Below, piece after piece: positions 3,170 to 62,099 of a DNA stretch of 64,000 bases. The stretch is taken from IMG/VR virus record IMGVR_UViG_3300027793_000052, positions 1 to 64,000 of that record. One strand, 5' to 3'. Below the pieces are notes generated by a model. It worked only from the letters and a program-made list of their open reading frames with translations, did not search any database and was not told where the DNA came from. The stretch's first letter is position 1; every line of letters starts with the position of its first letter. A program made the translations under genes and the position numbers.

Positions 3170-4780
3170 ATGACAAAGTTCAAATCAAAAGCAGTGGAAA
3201 ATTTTGACGGTGGTATTTCTTATACCTTAAACCCATTGGATACATTACGTATCGTGGCAGCATCATCTATCTTTGGTGAACCATCTTATTACAGAGGTTC
3301 TCACGACAAACCATCTAACTTATCTACGTTAAAGACGTATGACGTGTTAGGTTTGTACAAAGACCCAAGTGATACAACTACTGATGTTTTCACTAAGGCT
3401 ATCGACGAGGCTTTAGACTATGACTTCAAGGCAACCCTTGAGTTAGCTAAGACTCTTCGTCACGAACACTTCATGAGGTTAAACCCAGCGGTTATCTTCA
3501 TTAGAGCGTCTCAACACCCAAAGAGGGTTGAATTTAACGAAGCAAACCCAGGTTTGATGAAACAATACGGTTTGGACATTGTTGGTCGTCCTGATGACAT
3601 CACCAACCAATTTGATTACTACATGTTCTTAAACGGTTCTAAGAATGGTTTACCATCTATCGTTAAGAGGACATGGGCTGAGAAGTTGGCGTCTTTCACC
3701 AAGTACCAAATCAAGAAATATAAGTCAAAGTCATTAATTGACTTGGTTCGTATTTCTCACGCACACTCTGAAGTTATCGATGAGTTAATGAAGACTGGTG
3801 ACGTGGCTGTTTCTGAAACTGAAACAACTTGGGAATCACTTAGGTCTCAAGGTAAGACTTGGAAGGAAATTCTTAACACAATTAAGGTTTCACACATGGC
3901 TTTACTTAGGAACTTAAGGGGTATTTTCACTGAGGTGAATGATACTGAAGTGGCTAAGAAGGTTTTAACTGACCTTAAGGCAGGTGTTAAGTTTGGTAAG
4001 CAATTCCCATTCCGTTACTACACAGCTTACAAGGAAATCGATAAGGTTTCTATAAACCACAAGGGTATGATACTTGACGCTTTACAAGAGTGTCTTGACA
4101 TCTCTATCGAAAACTTCCCTAAGTTAAAGGGTAAGGTGGCTTGTTTATCAGATAACTCTGGTTCAGCTTGGGGTACAATGACCTCTGAGTATGGTACAAC
4201 CCATATTGCTGAAATTGCTAACTTATCATCTATCATCACAGCTTTATGTTCTGATGAAGGATATGTCGGTGTCTTTGGTGAAAGATTGAGTTTAAAACCT
4301 GTTTCTAAAAGAGACGGTATTATTACTCAGTTGGAAGAAACTTGTAAGAGAGGTAAGTCTCAAGGACAATCTTGTGAACACGGTATTTGGTTATTCTTAC
4401 GTGAAGCAATCGACACTAAAACTCACTATGATACTATCTTTATTTATAGTGACATGCAGGCAGGACACGGTGGTCTTTACGGTACAAGTGTAAGCCGTGG
4501 TGACGTTCACTCTAGAGGTGGAAGTTATGTAGACGTACTTAAAATGGTACAAGAATACCGTAAGAAGGTTAACCCAAAGGTTAACGTATTCACAGTCCAA
4601 GTGGCTGGATACAACAACTCTGTTGTACCTGAAAACCTTTACAGGGGTTCAGTACTTGGGGGTTGGACTGGTAAGGAAGCCTTATACGCTAGTGAGGTAA
4701 TCAAGACTTGGGATGAAATTGAGTCTAACGACAAGGTTACATCTGAGGTTGAAGTTACTGAACAAGTAGTACAATCTTAA
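3170..4780 (+). CDS. Ro60/TROVE-domain RNA-binding protein (Rsr-like) with vWA domain
   Basis: MALLRNLR, KQFPFRYYTAY, vWA DNSGS and YSDMQ motifs; 536 aa; codon usage (AAC, TTC, CGT) suggests high expression. Confidence 0.9.
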   Translation: MTKFKSKAVENFDGGISYTLNPLDTLRIVAASSIFGEPSYYRGSHDKPSNLSTLKTYDVLGLYKDPSDTTTDVFTKAIDEALDYDFKATLELAKTLRHEHFMRLNPAVIFIRASQHPKRVEFNEANPGLMKQYGLDIVGRPDDITNQFDYYMFLNGSKNGLPSIVKRTWAEKLASFTKYQIKKYKSKSLIDLVRISHAHSEVIDELMKTGDVAVSETETTWESLRSQGKTWKEILNTIKVSHMALLRNLRGIFTEVNDTEVAKKVLTDLKAGVKFGKQFPFRYYTAYKEIDKVSINHKGMILDALQECLDISIENFPKLKGKVACLSDNSGSAWGTMTSEYGTTHIAEIANLSSIITALCSDEGYVGVFGERLSLKPVSKRDGIITQLEETCKRGKSQGQSCEHGIWLFLREAIDTKTHYDTIFIYSDMQAGHGGLYGTSVSRGDVHSRGGSYVDVLKMVQEYRKKVNPKVNVFTVQVAGYNNSVVPENLYRGSVLGGWTGKEALYASEVIKTWDEIESNDKVTSEVEVTEQVVQS

Positions 4781-5256: not shown

Positions 5257-5309
5257 TTTGATTTTAATTTTTTATACACTATATTTGTGGTTAATAAAAA
5301 CAAACAGTC

Positions 5310-5993
5310 ATGGAAAAAGTAACATTAGAAATTCGAGCCGCTGAGGGTGGTGAAGATTCGAAACTCCTTGTGGAGGACATGGCTGCAGTCTATCTGAAAG
5401 CAGCCAAGAATAAAGGTTTTACCGTAGAGTCCGAACATTGAAGAGACGGACTTGTTAGTATTTAGCTGACAGGTAAAGGGGTTAAGAAATACTTCCAAAA
5501 CGAAGTTGGTTGTCATAGATGGCAAAGAATTCCACCCACTGAAAAACGTGGTAGAGTACATACAAGTACAATTACAGTAGCTTTATTAGATTCCCAAAAT
5601 TATCAGGAGATAGACATCAATATGGATGAATTACGTATTGAAACAACTCGTGGTACAGGTAATGGTGGTCAACATAAGAACACAACAGATTCTTGTGTGG
5701 TTATAACCCATATACCAACAGGGATAAAAGTGGTTAGAGATGGTAGAAGTCAACATAAGAATAAGGACGAGGCTTTAAACGAAATAAAACAACGTCTAAA
5801 TGATTTATACCAACAAAACCATATGGATAAAGTTTCTAAAGAAAGAAAGGGTCAAATCGGTAGTGGTAATAGGGGTTCTGAAAAGAAACGTACCTACAAC
5901 CAAAAAATGGATTTGGTTATCGATCATGAAAGTGATAAGTCTACAAGTCTTAAACAATTCATGAAAGGTAAATTAGAACTATTAATGTGTTAA
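5310..5993 (+). CDS. Class I peptide release factor homolog (RF1/PrfH-like, no N-terminal domain) with in-frame UGA and UAG
   Basis: EIRAAEGGED, HRWQRIPPTEKRGRVHTS (PxT) and GGQ all in one frame; stops at 5439 (TGA) and 5463 (TAG). Confidence 0.8.
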
Positions 5994-6068
5994 TATTAAA
6001 GGTGGGAATTACCCACCTTTTTTGTTTTAAAGAATATTTATAAGTGTGAGACATTTAGTAGGTGAAAT

Positions 6069-6260
6069 ATGGAAACTTATGAAAGAGAAAAAATAGATAA
6101 AATATTAGAACTAATTAAGGAGTTAAACATTAAACACAATGATAAGGATTTTGTTATTAGAGAGGTTTTAAATAACGAATTAAGGGCTAACTTAACAATT
6201 AATGGACTATTTGTTTCAGACGAATTCATATCAAATTATATAAAATATGTTATCGATTGA
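6069..6260 (+). CDS. Hypothetical protein
   Basis: ORF track; co-directional in gene run. Confidence 0.5.
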   Translation: METYEREKIDKILELIKELNIKHNDKDFVIREVLNNELRANLTINGLFVSDEFISNYIKYVID

Positions 6261-6263
6261 AAT

Positions 6264-8063
6264 ATGAGACATTTAATCAAGAAAATATTAAAAGAAGACA
6301 TCTTTCAAATGGATAGATTAAGGCAATTGGAAGAAGGTGACTTGTTCATCATCACAAAAGTTAATCAAAATCTAGAAGATTGTGATCCAGATGCTCTTAG
6401 TGTTCTAAACCCACTTATCGGTAAAGTTTGTAAAGTTATAACCACAGATTGGGATGTTAATTTATATGACGGTATGTGTGAAGAACATTATGGTTGGGGT
6501 GCTTATATAATGTCAGAAGATATGGTTGGTGGCCACGATTTATACGAAAAGAATGGTGAATGTAAAAAGGATAAATGTTATTGGGTTAATGACTACTATA
6601 TAGATTATGATATAATAGATGATGTAAATACTGATGAATTTTTTACACAACTAGACGAACAAGAAGAAGATTTTGGATGGATGGATGATATTATAGATAT
6701 ATCTATAAAAATAGGTGATGTTTTTTATATAGTAGATTATAATTACGGTTATGACATGCAACCTATAAATTATAGACCAAATGTAGTAAGATATATTTTT
6801 TATGTTACAGATATTTTTGAAGAAGGCGGTAAACTTCATTTAAATTACAAATATTGTGAACCTGTAAATGTCACATATAACCCAAAAGACTATATTAAAT
6901 CCAAATGTCGTTCCACGCAAGATGAGGTTATTGAATATGAAAGAGCTTTAGAGTTGGTAGATAAACAATATTGGCGATTTATGGGTAATAACAATATGAG
7001 TAATAATATAAACGAACAAGAAGAAGATTTTGGTTGGGCTGAAGAATCCATCTCAGGTGATTTAAATTTGGGTAAATATTTTGAAAATTCTGATATTTGT
7101 TTTGATGATGAAGTTAATGTTGATAACAACTGTAAAATTACCGTAACAAAAGATAGTTTTGTTTTTAAACTAAATTATAGTTGGTGGTTGAATAAATTTG
7201 GTGAAGACAATTGGATGTTGGATAGACTTATCAGATATGGAAGTATGGGATATGACAGTTATTATGTTGATTATGAGTTGGATGATGAGGAGTTTAATTA
7301 TATTTATTATATGATTAATGAAGAAAATAGATATAAACTAGCTGATTGTTTAAGTGTATTAAATGAAGATGTAAGTGAAAATGATTTAAAAAATAATCTA
7401 TATGATGTTTTTGAAAATTTTAATGGTATCTTACCGGTAGAAGGAATGGCCTCAGATGTTGTTTATGAACTATCAAGAGCTTTAGAAAAAAATCGAAATC
7501 AACAAATAAATTTGGAGTTTGAAGATTTAATGTCAAAGACTGTCGCTAAATTTGAACATGTTGGAGGTTGGAAAGAAGACTACATTTTAATAAAAATACC
7601 AAAAGAATTGGTTTTAGAAGCTTTAGAGCAAAATAAGGATGAAAATTTAACTGATATTGTGAAAAAATACAGTTACGTTTTTGATATAAATTGGGATGAT
7701 TTTTATTATGGTACTTTTGATTTAAGTGGTTCTGAGGATCAAATTAACGATATTATGGCCGATTATTTGGATAAATTAATTGATATATTAAATAATGATG
7801 ATACGATACAGACATTAAATAATTTTACATCTTCATTAAAAAAATTAGGTTTTAAAAAAGAAAATAATAAATGGTATAAAACAATTAAAAAAGATAATTT
7901 AGATTATGTTTTTATTGTTAGTGATATAAATGGTGAAGACATGAATTTAATTCTAACTATAACCGTTTTTTATGATACACAAACCAAATATAAAAATTAT
8001 AAATATAAAATAAGTTTTGACGAGTTGGGTTATTACATTAATAATTATATTTTAGACATATAA
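6264..8063 (+). CDS. Modular protein with MRHLIKKILKE leader and two EQEEDFGW junctions
   Basis: Leader plus repeated junction motif. Confidence 0.7.
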   Translation: MRHLIKKILKEDIFQMDRLRQLEEGDLFIITKVNQNLEDCDPDALSVLNPLIGKVCKVITTDWDVNLYDGMCEEHYGWGAYIMSEDMVGGHDLYEKNGECKKDKCYWVNDYYIDYDIIDDVNTDEFFTQLDEQEEDFGWMDDIIDISIKIGDVFYIVDYNYGYDMQPINYRPNVVRYIFYVTDIFEEGGKLHLNYKYCEPVNVTYNPKDYIKSKCRSTQDEVIEYERALELVDKQYWRFMGNNNMSNNINEQEEDFGWAEESISGDLNLGKYFENSDICFDDEVNVDNNCKITVTKDSFVFKLNYSWWLNKFGEDNWMLDRLIRYGSMGYDSYYVDYELDDEEFNYIYYMINEENRYKLADCLSVLNEDVSENDLKNNLYDVFENFNGILPVEGMASDVVYELSRALEKNRNQQINLEFEDLMSKTVAKFEHVGGWKEDYILIKIPKELVLEALEQNKDENLTDIVKKYSYVFDINWDDFYYGTFDLSGSEDQINDIMADYLDKLIDILNNDDTIQTLNNFTSSLKKLGFKKENNKWYKTIKKDNLDYVFIVSDINGEDMNLILTITVFYDTQTKYKNYKYKISFDELGYYINNYILDI

Positions 8064-8488
8064 TGAAAAATTTAATTAAAAAGATATTAAAAGAAAACGA
8101 AGAAGATTTTGGTTGGGCCGAAAATATTATAAGTTCTGATGATTTATTTATAAAAAGAGGGGATAATTATATTATAGATATGTGTAAAGATATGGTTGAT
8201 CCCAATTTGTTTAAAAAAAAATTTTACGAATTTTATGGTGAAAAAATAGTTGATGATTTAACTTCAAGAATGGATATTAACATCTTTAACAACCCCAACA
8301 TTGATGGTTATCTCAGAGAAAAAAAACCATTTCAAATATTAGTCGAATATGATGGAATAAAAATAAGTAGGACAGGATGGAATCCTTGTTATAGTGACTA
8401 TCAAGGTGAAAAATCCAAATTTACCAAAAAATTTCCTAAATTAAAATCTTTTACACCTTCAGACTTTCTATCGCTTATAATGGTTTAA
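8063..8488 (+). CDS. Single-module protein with MKNLIKKILKENEEDFGW leader
   Basis: Same motif family. Confidence 0.7.
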   Translation: MKNLIKKILKENEEDFGWAENIISSDDLFIKRGDNYIIDMCKDMVDPNLFKKKFYEFYGEKIVDDLTSRMDINIFNNPNIDGYLREKKPFQILVEYDGIKISRTGWNPCYSDYQGEKSKFTKKFPKLKSFTPSDFLSLIMV

Positions 8489-8614: not shown

Positions 8615-10249
8615 GTGAAAATAAAATTATCCATATTATTTTTTTTATTCAGTTTAATCAATTCGGTTAAGTCACAAGTATCTACATGGTATACATTTTC
8701 TGAAACGGTTGGTACTTATACGGCCATAACAGGTGGTACTCAATTAGTTACCACAACTGCCGGTGCTATAACATATGATACTGACGGTAATAATATCGTT
8801 CTTCCTACCACATCAAGATTTGTCGTAAATGGTATTATCATTACAAATGTAAATATGACTGCGGATGGTTCACTATGGTGTAATCCAGTTACACCGACAT
8901 CTGGTTTTGGTACTACGGGTCCATTACAATCAGGTCAAGATGCGGCTGGTATAATATCAGTTATGGGAATGGATTTACGTAGTACTGCATTAGCTACACA
9001 AGTTTATGAAAGAAGATGGCAAGATGTGGGGACTGAAGTTGTATTTCAATGGCAGAATTGTGCGAGATATCTACAAAGTGGTACGGAAAGATTTTCATTT
9101 CAAATTAGAATAAACAAAACAAATAATCAGATTAGAATGGTATATGGTAATATGACAACCATAGCCAACAGTACCACTTATCAACCACAAGTTGGAATAC
9201 GAGGTCTTACCAATGCTGATTACATAGCCAGACGATTAACTAATTCAGTACCCGATGCATCTCCTAATTGGGGCGCACCTAATGGGACGACTAACGCCAC
9301 TACAAACGCACATACAGTTAGGTTTACATCTAATGGTTCTTGTTTTCCTGTTTCAGGATTAACATTTATATGGTCATATAGCGGTCCTTTATTCAATAAC
9401 GATTTGTGTGAGAATGCAACTCTTGTTACATTACCATATAATAGTGGAGTTGTAACAACGATAGGTTCAAGTACAGATGTTCCGAATGTCGCATCACCCT
9501 GTGACGATTATATTACTCAATCAAATAACTTATGGTATAGAGTAGTTGGTACGGGTAATGATATGACTTTTAATACATGTAACGCCTCTACTAATTTTGA
9601 TTCTGAAATAAGAGTTTATACAGGTGATTGTTCTTCATTAAATAGTATGGTTGAAGTTGTATGTAGTGATGATGATCCAAATTGTACTTCAGGTGGTGTG
9701 TTAGATCCTTCCGTTACGTGGTGTTCATCATTAGGTGTTAATTATTTTATATCTGTCGGATATTACACAGTTACAAGTACATTAAGTACTGGTAATTACG
9801 TATTAAGTGGTGTAGAAGGAGGTTCTTGTTCATCACTACCAGTAGAACTAATTCATTTTTCCGGTAAAGGATTTGAACATTATAATTTATTAAGGTGGAA
9901 AACCGCCACAGAAATAAATAATGACCATTTCACACTTGAAAGAAGTTTAGATGGAATTAGATTTCAAGAAATACAACAAATTGATGGTATGGGTAATTCT
10001 AATGTAATTCAAGAATACTCGACACGTGATTTTGAACTAAATACAGGGTTAATATATTACAGACTTATACAAACAGATTATGATGGTACACGTACCTATT
10101 CAGATATAATTGTAATTAATAGAGACCCTTACAAATCACTTAAGGTTGTTAGAATTACAAATGTATTAGGTCAAGACATAAATGAATGGAGTCCAGGTAT
10201 TAAACTCTATCATTATAGTGATGGTAGTATTGAAAAGAGAATAGAATAA
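8615..10249 (+). CDS. Secreted beta-rich protein with T9SS-type C-terminal region
   Basis: GTG start, signal peptide, LPVELIHF...WKTATEINNDHFTLERS...YYRLIQTDYDG and terminal NVLGQ..G..YSDG..EK typical of Bacteroidota T9SS cargo. Confidence 0.7.
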   Translation: MKIKLSILFFLFSLINSVKSQVSTWYTFSETVGTYTAITGGTQLVTTTAGAITYDTDGNNIVLPTTSRFVVNGIIITNVNMTADGSLWCNPVTPTSGFGTTGPLQSGQDAAGIISVMGMDLRSTALATQVYERRWQDVGTEVVFQWQNCARYLQSGTERFSFQIRINKTNNQIRMVYGNMTTIANSTTYQPQVGIRGLTNADYIARRLTNSVPDASPNWGAPNGTTNATTNAHTVRFTSNGSCFPVSGLTFIWSYSGPLFNNDLCENATLVTLPYNSGVVTTIGSSTDVPNVASPCDDYITQSNNLWYRVVGTGNDMTFNTCNASTNFDSEIRVYTGDCSSLNSMVEVVCSDDDPNCTSGGVLDPSVTWCSSLGVNYFISVGYYTVTSTLSTGNYVLSGVEGGSCSSLPVELIHFSGKGFEHYNLLRWKTATEINNDHFTLERSLDGIRFQEIQQIDGMGNSNVIQEYSTRDFELNTGLIYYRLIQTDYDGTRTYSDIIVINRDPYKSLKVVRITNVLGQDINEWSPGIKLYHYSDGSIEKRIE

Positions 10250-14839: not shown

Positions 14840-14941
14840 AGTCAGGTGGCGTAATTGGTAACCGCTATAGGGTTGAGGCGTGCTAACTACCTATATAAAT
14901 TGTTTTTAAACAATGCAGGTTCGAGTCCTGTCCTGACTACA
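14840..14941 (+). ncRNA. tRNA-like RNA, AGTCAGG family copy 1 (aberrant anticodon arm)
   Basis: AGTCAGG/CCTGACT acceptor, CAGGTTCGAGTCCTG T-arm, no 7-nt anticodon loop. Confidence 0.65.
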
Positions 14942-15384: not shown

Positions 15385-15461
15385 AGTCAGGTGGTAGAAT
15401 TGTGATTACACCTTGGGACGAATGTCTAGGAGATACAGGTTCGAATCCTGTCCTGACTACA
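15385..15461 (+). ncRNA. tRNA-like RNA, AGTCAGG family copy 3
   Basis: Same acceptor and T-arm; central hairpin with 4-nt loop. Confidence 0.6.
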
Positions 15462-18033: not shown

Positions 18034-18107
18034 ACATCTGAGACCATATAGGAATTGGTACTGGCTTCCAAACCCAGTTGTTGCAGGTTCGAATCCTGTC
18101 AGATGTG
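18034..18107 (+). tRNA. tRNA-Trp(CCA)
   Basis: TTCCAAA loop; ACATCTG/CAGATGT. Confidence 0.8.
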
Positions 18108-18112
18108 CAAAA

Positions 18113-30868: not shown

Positions 30869-31259
30869 GGGGGTGACTTGGAATTGATTGGCTACATTAG
30901 TTATTGTAAAAGCATGTCGAGACTTGTTTGTAGGCTCGTTAAACCAACAATCAAAATTTTAAATGGCGACATTTTCGCAGACGCTACTGTAGGTCACTTT
31001 GTGACTGAAGGTGCAGAGGTTGTAGCCTAATTAGATTAGGGTACACAACGGGGTTGGATTACCTAGGAACAGAAGTCCAAAAAAGGGTGTTACCACTACC
31101 ACAAAAGGGTAAAGTCAAACATGGAATGTGTCAACTAAGTCCATGGGAGAACTAAAAGATGAAGTTGTATATTTTGGGTGGTTAGAAAACCACATCCTAA
31201 ACATGTAGAAGACTTTAATTCATTAGAACAAGACGGCGGTTCGACCCCGCTCACCTCCA
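30869..31259 (+). ncRNA. ssrA: tmRNA
   Basis: GGGGGTG/CACCTCC-A acceptor with G3-U70, GCATGTCGAG after helix 2, GACGGCGGTTCGACCCCGC T-arm; tag ORF 30965-31030. Confidence 0.92.
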
Positions 31260-31292
31260 CTTTAGAAATTTATTAACCTAAAAATCGAAAAA

Positions 31293-57269: not shown

Positions 57270-57692
57270 ATGGTGAACAGGAAAGTTAGGTTTAATTACG
57301 ATATATTAGAAGAATATAAGGCAGGTATTGTTTTAATAGGTTCTGAGGTTAAGTCTATTAAATCGGGTGATGTCAGTGTCGACGGGTCTTATTGCTTCTT
57401 CAAGGACGGTGAGTTGTTTATTAAAAATATGTACGTCAAACCATATGAAAGTTCAAGAAATGATTTAGACCCAAGACGTGATAGAAAATTACTTCTTAAA
57501 AAAAAAGAAATTAAAAAGTTACAAATAGCTCTTAGTGAAAAAGGTTTAACTATAATACCTTTGGCTTTAAAAAATGAAGGTAGAATAAAAGTTATAATTG
57601 GTGTTGGTAGAGGTAAAAAAATATACGATAAAAAAGAAACAATAAAAGAACGTGATATAAAAAAACAATTAAAGAAAAATTATGAAATTTAA
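57270..57692 (+). CDS. smpB: SsrA-binding protein SmpB
   Basis: NRKVRFNY..AGIVLIGSEVKSI, DPRRDRKLLL, GRGKKIYDKKETIKERD. Confidence 0.95.
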   Translation: MVNRKVRFNYDILEEYKAGIVLIGSEVKSIKSGDVSVDGSYCFFKDGELFIKNMYVKPYESSRNDLDPRRDRKLLLKKKEIKKLQIALSEKGLTIIPLALKNEGRIKVIIGVGRGKKIYDKKETIKERDIKKQLKKNYEI

Positions 57693-61297: not shown

Positions 61298-62099
61298 ATG
61301 AACCAAAAAATTATAAAGATTTGCGAAGAAAAGTTTATATACTTAAATTACTCTCCTCGAACAAAAGATAATTATTTAAGTCACATTAAAGACTTCCTAA
61401 AATCTCTGGGAGATAAACAAGTCATTCATTGTAATTCAAAAGATTTCCAATCTTACTTAGATAACTACAAATTTACCTCTATTTCACAACAAAACCAAGT
61501 TATTAACTCAATCAGATTTCTCTACAAATTCGGTCTAAATAAGAAATACGATAAAGTATCTTTCAAACGACCCAAGTCAGAAAAGAAGTTACCAAAAGTA
61601 ATTGATAATGATTACATTATAGAGTGTCTATCGAAGATAAATAATTTGAAGCATAAATCAATATTATCTTTGTCGTATTCGGTTGGTTTGAGGGTTTTCA
61701 GAAGTTGTTAATCTTAAGATAGAAGACATTGATTCTAAAAGAATGATAATCCATATCAAAAACGCTAAAGGTAGAAAAGATAGGGTAGTCCCCCTTTCTC
61801 AGAACATCTTAGAATTATTAAGAAGTTATTACAAAGAGTTTAGGCCAATTGATTTTTTATTTAATGGTCAAAATAACTTAAAATATAGTACTGGCAGTTG
61901 TAACCAAATTGTTAAAAAATACTTAGGTGAAAAATATCACATTCACCAATTAAGACATAGTTGTGCAACAAACCTATTGGAGAATGGTACAGACCTAAAA
62001 TTAATTCAAAAAATATTAGGTCATTATTCAGTTAAAACTACAGAAATATATACACATGTCTCAAATCAATTATTGTCAAAGGTAAATCTTCCTATTTAA
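61298..62099 (+). pseudogene. Tyrosine recombinase (IntI/XerD-like) split by a 1-nt frameshift
   Basis: YSVGLRV then, after an extra T at about 61694-61697, SEVVNLKIEDID..KGRKDR..HQLRHSCAT..LGHYSVKTTEIYTHV. Confidence 0.85.

Follow-up and report, generated by a model that had tools for sequence, protein, structure and literature searches.

The first 64 kb of a giant freshwater phage contig carry a gene for an RF1-like class I release factor that is interrupted by two conserved in-frame stop codons, TGA and TAG. The full-length factor is therefore probably made only when translation termination in the infected cell is failing. Within the literature searched, we found no prior description of this kind of self-control for bacterial-type factors. 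The window, by which we mean the whole 64,000-nucleotide stretch analysed, is the start of a roughly 318-kb contig (Ga0209990_10000003; IMGVR_UViG_3300027793_000052). An earlier note, made from the sequence alone, had proposed that the gene is a candidate for autoregulation by double stop-codon readthrough. Here, the observation is confirmed and the core of that interpretation is supported, although readthrough, the residues inserted and the feedback are all inferred. The gene and its surroundings are organized as follows.

5258..5285 (+), promoter-like site (TTGATT-16-TATATT) just upstream of the gene, only a consensus match
5310..5993 (+), whole recoded gene for a domain-1-less RF1-like class I release factor, 227 codons plus TAA
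5310..5438 (+), N-terminal segment (codons 1-43), aligning to Thermus thermophilus RF1 108-143 and including the EIRAxxGGE(E/D) stretch, conserved in all relatives
5428..5452 (+), AGTCCG/CGGACT inverted repeat (5428-5433 / 5447-5452) around the TGA, not conserved and probably incidental
5439..5441 (+), in-frame TGA (codon 44), context CAT TGA A
5442..5462 (+), seven codons between the stops (RDGLVSI), translated in frame 0
5463..5465 (+), in-frame TAG (codon 52), context ATT TAG C; relatives have TGA-C here, and one has TAA-C
5466..5990 (+), C-terminal segment (codons 53-227) with PPT (5532-5540) and GGQ (5664-5672)
5991..5993 (+), true stop codon TAA; all relatives end in TAA
5998..6030 (+), intrinsic-terminator-like hairpin (5998-6020) plus T run

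Both sides of the stops are release-factor sequence. The Pfam PCRF domain (PF03462) matches the 43-residue N piece (E 1.2e-6), and PCRF plus RF-1 (PF00472) match the 175-residue C piece (E 5e-11 and 2e-26). Among NCBIfam models the best was prfA (185 bits), compared to 108 for prfB and 77 for PrfH. The best solved structure was T. thermophilus RF1, to which the C piece aligns over residues 164-321 with 130 bits, against 83 for RF2. The protein carries the RF1-type stretch WQRIPPTEKRGRVHTS, with the PPT motif at codons 75-77 and RF1-type flanking residues (QRxPxTE..GRxHTS) rather than SPF, and GGQ at codons 119-121. However, it is not a canonical full-length RF1. Domain 1 is missing, the PCRF match starts at model position 101 of 194, and the prfA scores (185.7 and 180.6 bits) fall below the cut-offs of the two models (400 and 423). 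The two stops lie in domain 2, between the helix that carries the EIRAxxGGE(E/D) stretch and the PxT loop.

The window is about 30% G+C, with genes almost all on one strand, and carries 22-26 tRNA genes and a tmRNA. Of 79 + strand ORFs of at least 80 aa, 61 end in TAA, 12 in TGA and 6 in TAG; for example, a DnaJ-like gene upstream ends at TGA 10 nt before the next start. No other conserved gene in the window is broken by TGA or TAG. The statement of the earlier note that this is not genome-wide recoding thus holds for the window. Its remark that the 5' part is GC-rich describes a modest but real effect, since GC is 0.43 against 0.34, and GC3 is 0.35 against 0.23, for codons 1-60 against the rest, and most relatives show the same trend. 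The region 6069-8063 has a 63-codon ORF ending at TGA (6258-6260) and a 599-codon ORF starting at an ATG one codon later in the same frame, which could be two genes or a second readthrough case. Adjacent ORFs at 6264-6300 and 8063-8110 share an N-terminal motif (LIKKILKE...EEDFGW), and many partly matching contigs pile up at 6264-6298, suggesting a multi-copy gene family with a common leader. A tyrosine recombinase gene at 61298-62099 is also split into two ORFs, and reading through it requires a +1 shift in a GGG TTT TCA run near 61690. Several independent contigs (L088-L090) show the same split, which could be a frameshift mutation or another programmed shift.

The interruptions are not assembly errors. 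The same sequence occurs in two IMG/VR assemblies from different samples and in a JGI contig of 318,004 bp, and the stretch is present in 20 public runs from many studies. Relatives 92-93% identical in protein (L086/L087, L191, L193) have the same TGA and TAG, and a divergent DNA strain also keeps both stops. Contigs from three freshwater metatranscriptomes begin at 5313, 5347 and 5404 and end at 5989-6061. Over the stops they are identical to the window and show no joints, so RNA editing and splicing were rejected. Depth differs sharply between neighbouring genes in the RNA runs, which argues for real transcripts, although DNA carry-over cannot be excluded. In these three metatranscriptomes a TROVE/Ro60-like gene lying two genes upstream (3170-4780) has an RNA-contig depth of 120-130, far higher than that of its neighbours. 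No Y RNA was found with Rfam. In L086 an RNA ligase follows the release-factor gene, so the neighbourhood looks like an RNA-repair and translation-quality module.

Every close relative checked has stops at the same two codons. Database homologs of 225-228 aa appeared to have Trp at both positions, which suggested simple nonsense mutations of TGG. This possibility was rejected because all five that were traced to DNA have TGA there and had been translated with code 4 by gene callers on short contigs; uninterrupted family members have K or R at the second site. A stop at codon 44 was found in 11 relatives. Pairwise dN/dS is 0.07-0.24 for the 50 codons before the second stop and 0.06-0.24 for the 174 codons after it, with synonymous sites saturated (dS often above 1-2). 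The seven codons between the stops are conserved as KEGLVSI, REGFVVM or RDGYVSI, with synonymous changes such as Ser AGT against TCC. They are therefore translated in frame 0, which excludes bypassing and paired frameshifts. The outcomes that the earlier note had named as refuting its idea (sense codons in relatives, relaxed selection, sequencing errors) were all tested and none occurred.

The contexts of the stops look selected for leakiness. In distinct sequences, 45 in-frame stops are followed by A (22), C (22) or G (1) and never by T, whereas true stops of window genes are followed by T (37), A (34), C (6) or G (5), so that T follows in 45% of cases. Later metagenome hits add one TGA-T exception and one lineage with TAA-C at the second site; an in-frame TAA at the second site is present in the relative L222. 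The +4U base is the strong termination context in bacteria (PMC5289835). In addition, the Leu after the second site is always CTN (16 of 16), although 76% of Leu codons in the window are TTR. By contrast, no conserved stimulatory RNA structure was found, as RNAalifold gave no conserved pairs in 20 relatives, but this feature is not obligatory for bacterial readthrough. The AGTCCG/CGGACT hairpin highlighted in the earlier note exists, with TGA in its loop, but it is confined to the window's subclade. Its 5' arm would be inside the ribosome when the stop is decoded, and it cannot act while the stop is in the A site.

The wider family gives independent support for termination-sensing control. We classified the region upstream of the conserved C-terminal part in 80 viral loci and 13 close loci from MAGs or genomes. 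About 53 of these 93 need a +1 shift at CTT-TGA-C, CTT-TAG-C or (once) CTT-TAA-C, placed in the same part of domain 2, either at the position of the conserved RF1 Trp or just after the window's second stop. In the G+C-rich ones a GGAGG-like element lies 3-6 nt upstream, and it is absent in low-GC ones. About 32 have one or two in-frame stops, three (L023, L032 and L075, with L216/L217 similar) combine an in-frame TGA with a CTT-TAG-C cassette, and only 8 are uninterrupted. On a maximum-likelihood tree the window groups with the relative L003 (TGA+TAG), and that pair is sister to L004, L006 and L091 (TGA+TGA) with 100/95 support. The recoding type changes at least 29 times over the tree. GenBank huge phages from the 2020 survey also belong: LR745206.1 (634,780 bp, complete) has TGA+TGA at the window's codons, LR756501.1 (735 kb) has two TGAs, and LR756504.1 has one. 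Plasmid and GenBank phage searches returned only canonical prfA genes and unannotated huge-phage genomes. Family members occur in cultured bacteria, namely Thiobacillus denitrificans DSM 12475 (CTT TGA C cassette) and the 307-kb plasmid of Cupriavidus sp. TMH.W2 (in-frame TGA), which are possible experimental models. The evidence points to a Bacteroidota host of the window phage, since large secreted-looking proteins (window 8615-10249; L086 3218-6361) have a CHU_C-type C-terminal domain as found in Bacteroidota type IX secretion substrates, start sites lack Shine-Dalgarno sequences, and L091 was binned as Bacteroidetes.

No tRNA with a CUA, UCA or UUA anticodon was found by ARAGORN or Rfam in the window, in L086 or in L088. 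Four extra tRNAs seen with Rfam are Ile(tat), Asp and two odd ones that cannot be read as suppressors, and the "ccta" tRNA of L004 is most simply a tRNA-Arg(CCU). Two paralogous tRNA-like genes (14840-14939 and 15385-15459), found by Rfam but not by default ARAGORN, share acceptor and T arms. Their anticodon loops are enlarged by about 11 and about 3 nt, the first has a long variable arm, and no anticodon can be assigned. Importantly, the complete LR745206.1 has 59 tRNAs, none of which is a suppressor. ORFs under the standard code cover 76% of it, codes 4 or 15 add only 2%, and TGA ends 18% of its long ORFs. At least for the two-TGA state, then, no dedicated suppressor or code change is visible, and this points to near-cognate readthrough, with tRNA-Trp expected at UGA and Gln, Tyr or Trp tRNAs at UAG. 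The phage tRNA-Trp(CCA) genes have a mismatch in the anticodon stem, C31.C39 in the window (18034-18108) and A28.C42 in LR745206.1 (343033-343104).

It is thus somewhat more likely than not that the gene encodes a functional phage class I release factor of RF1 type, with domains 2-4 only, whose synthesis requires programmed readthrough of two leaky stops, UGA-A and UAG-C. When the cell's release factors are plentiful, translation would end at one of these stops and only a 43- or 51-residue fragment would be made, whereas when termination is slow ordinary near-cognate tRNAs would win the competition at both. Because the stops are in series, output would depend on the product of two readthrough probabilities, an AND-like, steep response to simultaneous shortage of RF2-type and RF1-type activity. 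This is the condition under which UAA, the dominant stop of the phage and one read by both factors, would fail. The product should restore UAA/UAG termination and so shut off its own synthesis at the UAG. Autoregulation, as worded in the earlier note, strictly applies only to the UAG, since the factor has RF1-type recognition residues and the UGA would report RF2. Two stops in series would give a very low yield at normal release-factor levels, which is odd for a factor that must act stoichiometrically on ribosomes. In addition, TGA, TAG and TAA interchange freely at these sites between close relatives with the same PPT motif, and no link was seen between the tripeptide motif (PPT, SPT, PPN) and the stop used. 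The interchange fits a generic slow-termination sensor better than specific autoregulation, or suggests that specificity differs from prediction.

An alternative that appears unlikely but remains possible is that phage-encoded suppressor tRNAs outside the window decode the stops, an amber suppressor for UAG and perhaps an opal suppressor for UGA, so that the factor would appear only after the phage switches the code of the cell. Thirteen of 29 related loci scanned have a tRNA with a CUA anticodon 1-3 kb downstream of the release-factor gene, published models place release factors and suppressor tRNAs together in recoded phages (PMC6784885), and only about 74 kb of the roughly 318-kb genome was inspected, so a suppressor cannot be excluded in the remaining 250 kb or so. 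However, besides the negative tRNA searches and the standard-code gene structure of the window and LR745206.1, the relatives with tRNA(CUA) have TGA, not TAG, as their in-frame stops. Two different suppressors would be needed, and an RF1-type factor would oppose amber suppression.

The remaining explanations are very improbable. General reassignment of TGA (code 4 or 25) and/or TAG might be suggested by the code-4 calls on short contigs that hold only this gene, and by the binning of some relatives with CPR bacteria (for instance L094), but it is contradicted for the window by the TGA and TAG gene ends and by the fact that code 4 or code 15 adds almost no coding coverage; moreover, no single known code explains both TGA and TAG. 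A decaying pseudogene would account for two premature stops within 52 codons and for the 123-aa remnant annotated by gene callers, but not for the low dN/dS, the avoidance of T after the stop, the representation in RNA, or the lack of further stops or frameshifts in 227 codons of about 30% GC sequence in dozens of distinct relatives. Stops are also retained at the same codons across lineages down to about 40-46% identity (the 634-735-kb phages). It is also doubtful that the pieces work separately, with a C-terminal GGQ-domain protein from the internal ATG at 5622 acting as a codon-independent peptidyl-tRNA hydrolase of the ArfB/ICT1 kind behind a leader. In favour of this, ORF 5622-5993 holds GGQ, there is a weak ArfB-model match, and the phage also encodes a tmRNA (30869-31262; Rfam, 82 bits) and an SmpB homolog (about 57270-57692). 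However, that Met is not conserved, with Leu, Pro or other residues in relatives, and codons 1-104, including PPT and the RF1 108-143 equivalent, are under the same purifying selection and in the same frame. No start codon follows the second stop, and there is no ArfB-like C-terminal tail.

A more far-reaching possibility, somewhat less likely than not, is that this would be the first natural bacterial-type release-factor gene controlled by in-frame stop-codon readthrough, an arrangement predicted before prfB was sequenced and listed as unknown for both RF2/UGA and RF1/UAG in a 2016 review (PMC5009743). It would work as a two-input translational AND gate, with a UGA sensor for RF2 and a UAG sensor for RF1, and would be one state of a large, previously unrecognised family of huge-phage release factors that interconvert between in-frame stops and prfB-like +1 cassettes using TGA, TAG or TAA. 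Such genes, currently called as truncated fragments or mistranslated with code 4, offer a natural test bed for how ribosomes choose between termination, readthrough and frameshifting, and compact sensors of RF1 and RF2 activity for synthetic biology. They also offer a possible explanation of why huge phages carry their own termination factors, namely to buffer termination capacity during infection.

Among known systems, the release factors of stop-codon-recoded phages (Lak, Agate and Jade phages) are likewise phage-encoded and next to tRNA clusters, but those reports describe the genes as written in standard code and do not mention recoding inside them, and the window shows no code change and no suppressor. 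PrfH, the RF-like partner of RtcB2, is also about 200-230 aa, lacks domain 1 and sits in an RNA-repair-type neighbourhood. However, the window protein scores 77 bits against the PrfH model (TIGR03072; cut-off 167) and 50 bits against PDB PrfH, it keeps the PxT-type motif, and no RtcB was found in the neighbourhood. The Megavirus/Mimivirus release factor gene needs stop-codon readthrough and a frameshift (PMC5009743), but it is a eukaryote/archaeal-type eRF1 of an amoeba virus, unrelated in sequence and acting on different ribosomes. Programmed UGA readthrough by normal tRNA-Trp, as probably occurs for the Q-beta A1 coat protein, gives a fixed low ratio of two useful products, whereas here two stops of different kinds lie inside a catalytic factor, the short product has no evident use, and the level of the gene product should itself alter the readthrough.

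The closest parallel is the prfB (RF2) +1 frameshift at CUU UGA C, the single textbook case in bacteria of release-factor synthesis controlled by recoding. A 2025 survey found no TAG among 8,164 prfB motifs and no convincing prfA frameshift (PMC12421855). In both prfB and the window gene, a release-factor gene is interrupted early by a stop codon in a weak context, so that synthesis rises, or is inferred to rise, when termination is slow, and most relatives of the window gene carry literally the same CTT-stop-C cassette. The window gene itself has neither the slippery site, as its stops are preceded by CAT and ATT, nor a Shine-Dalgarno-like element upstream. It stays in frame 0 and would need readthrough rather than a frameshift, and its two stops, one of them TAG, lie in domain 2 of an RF1-type, domain-1-less factor encoded by a phage.
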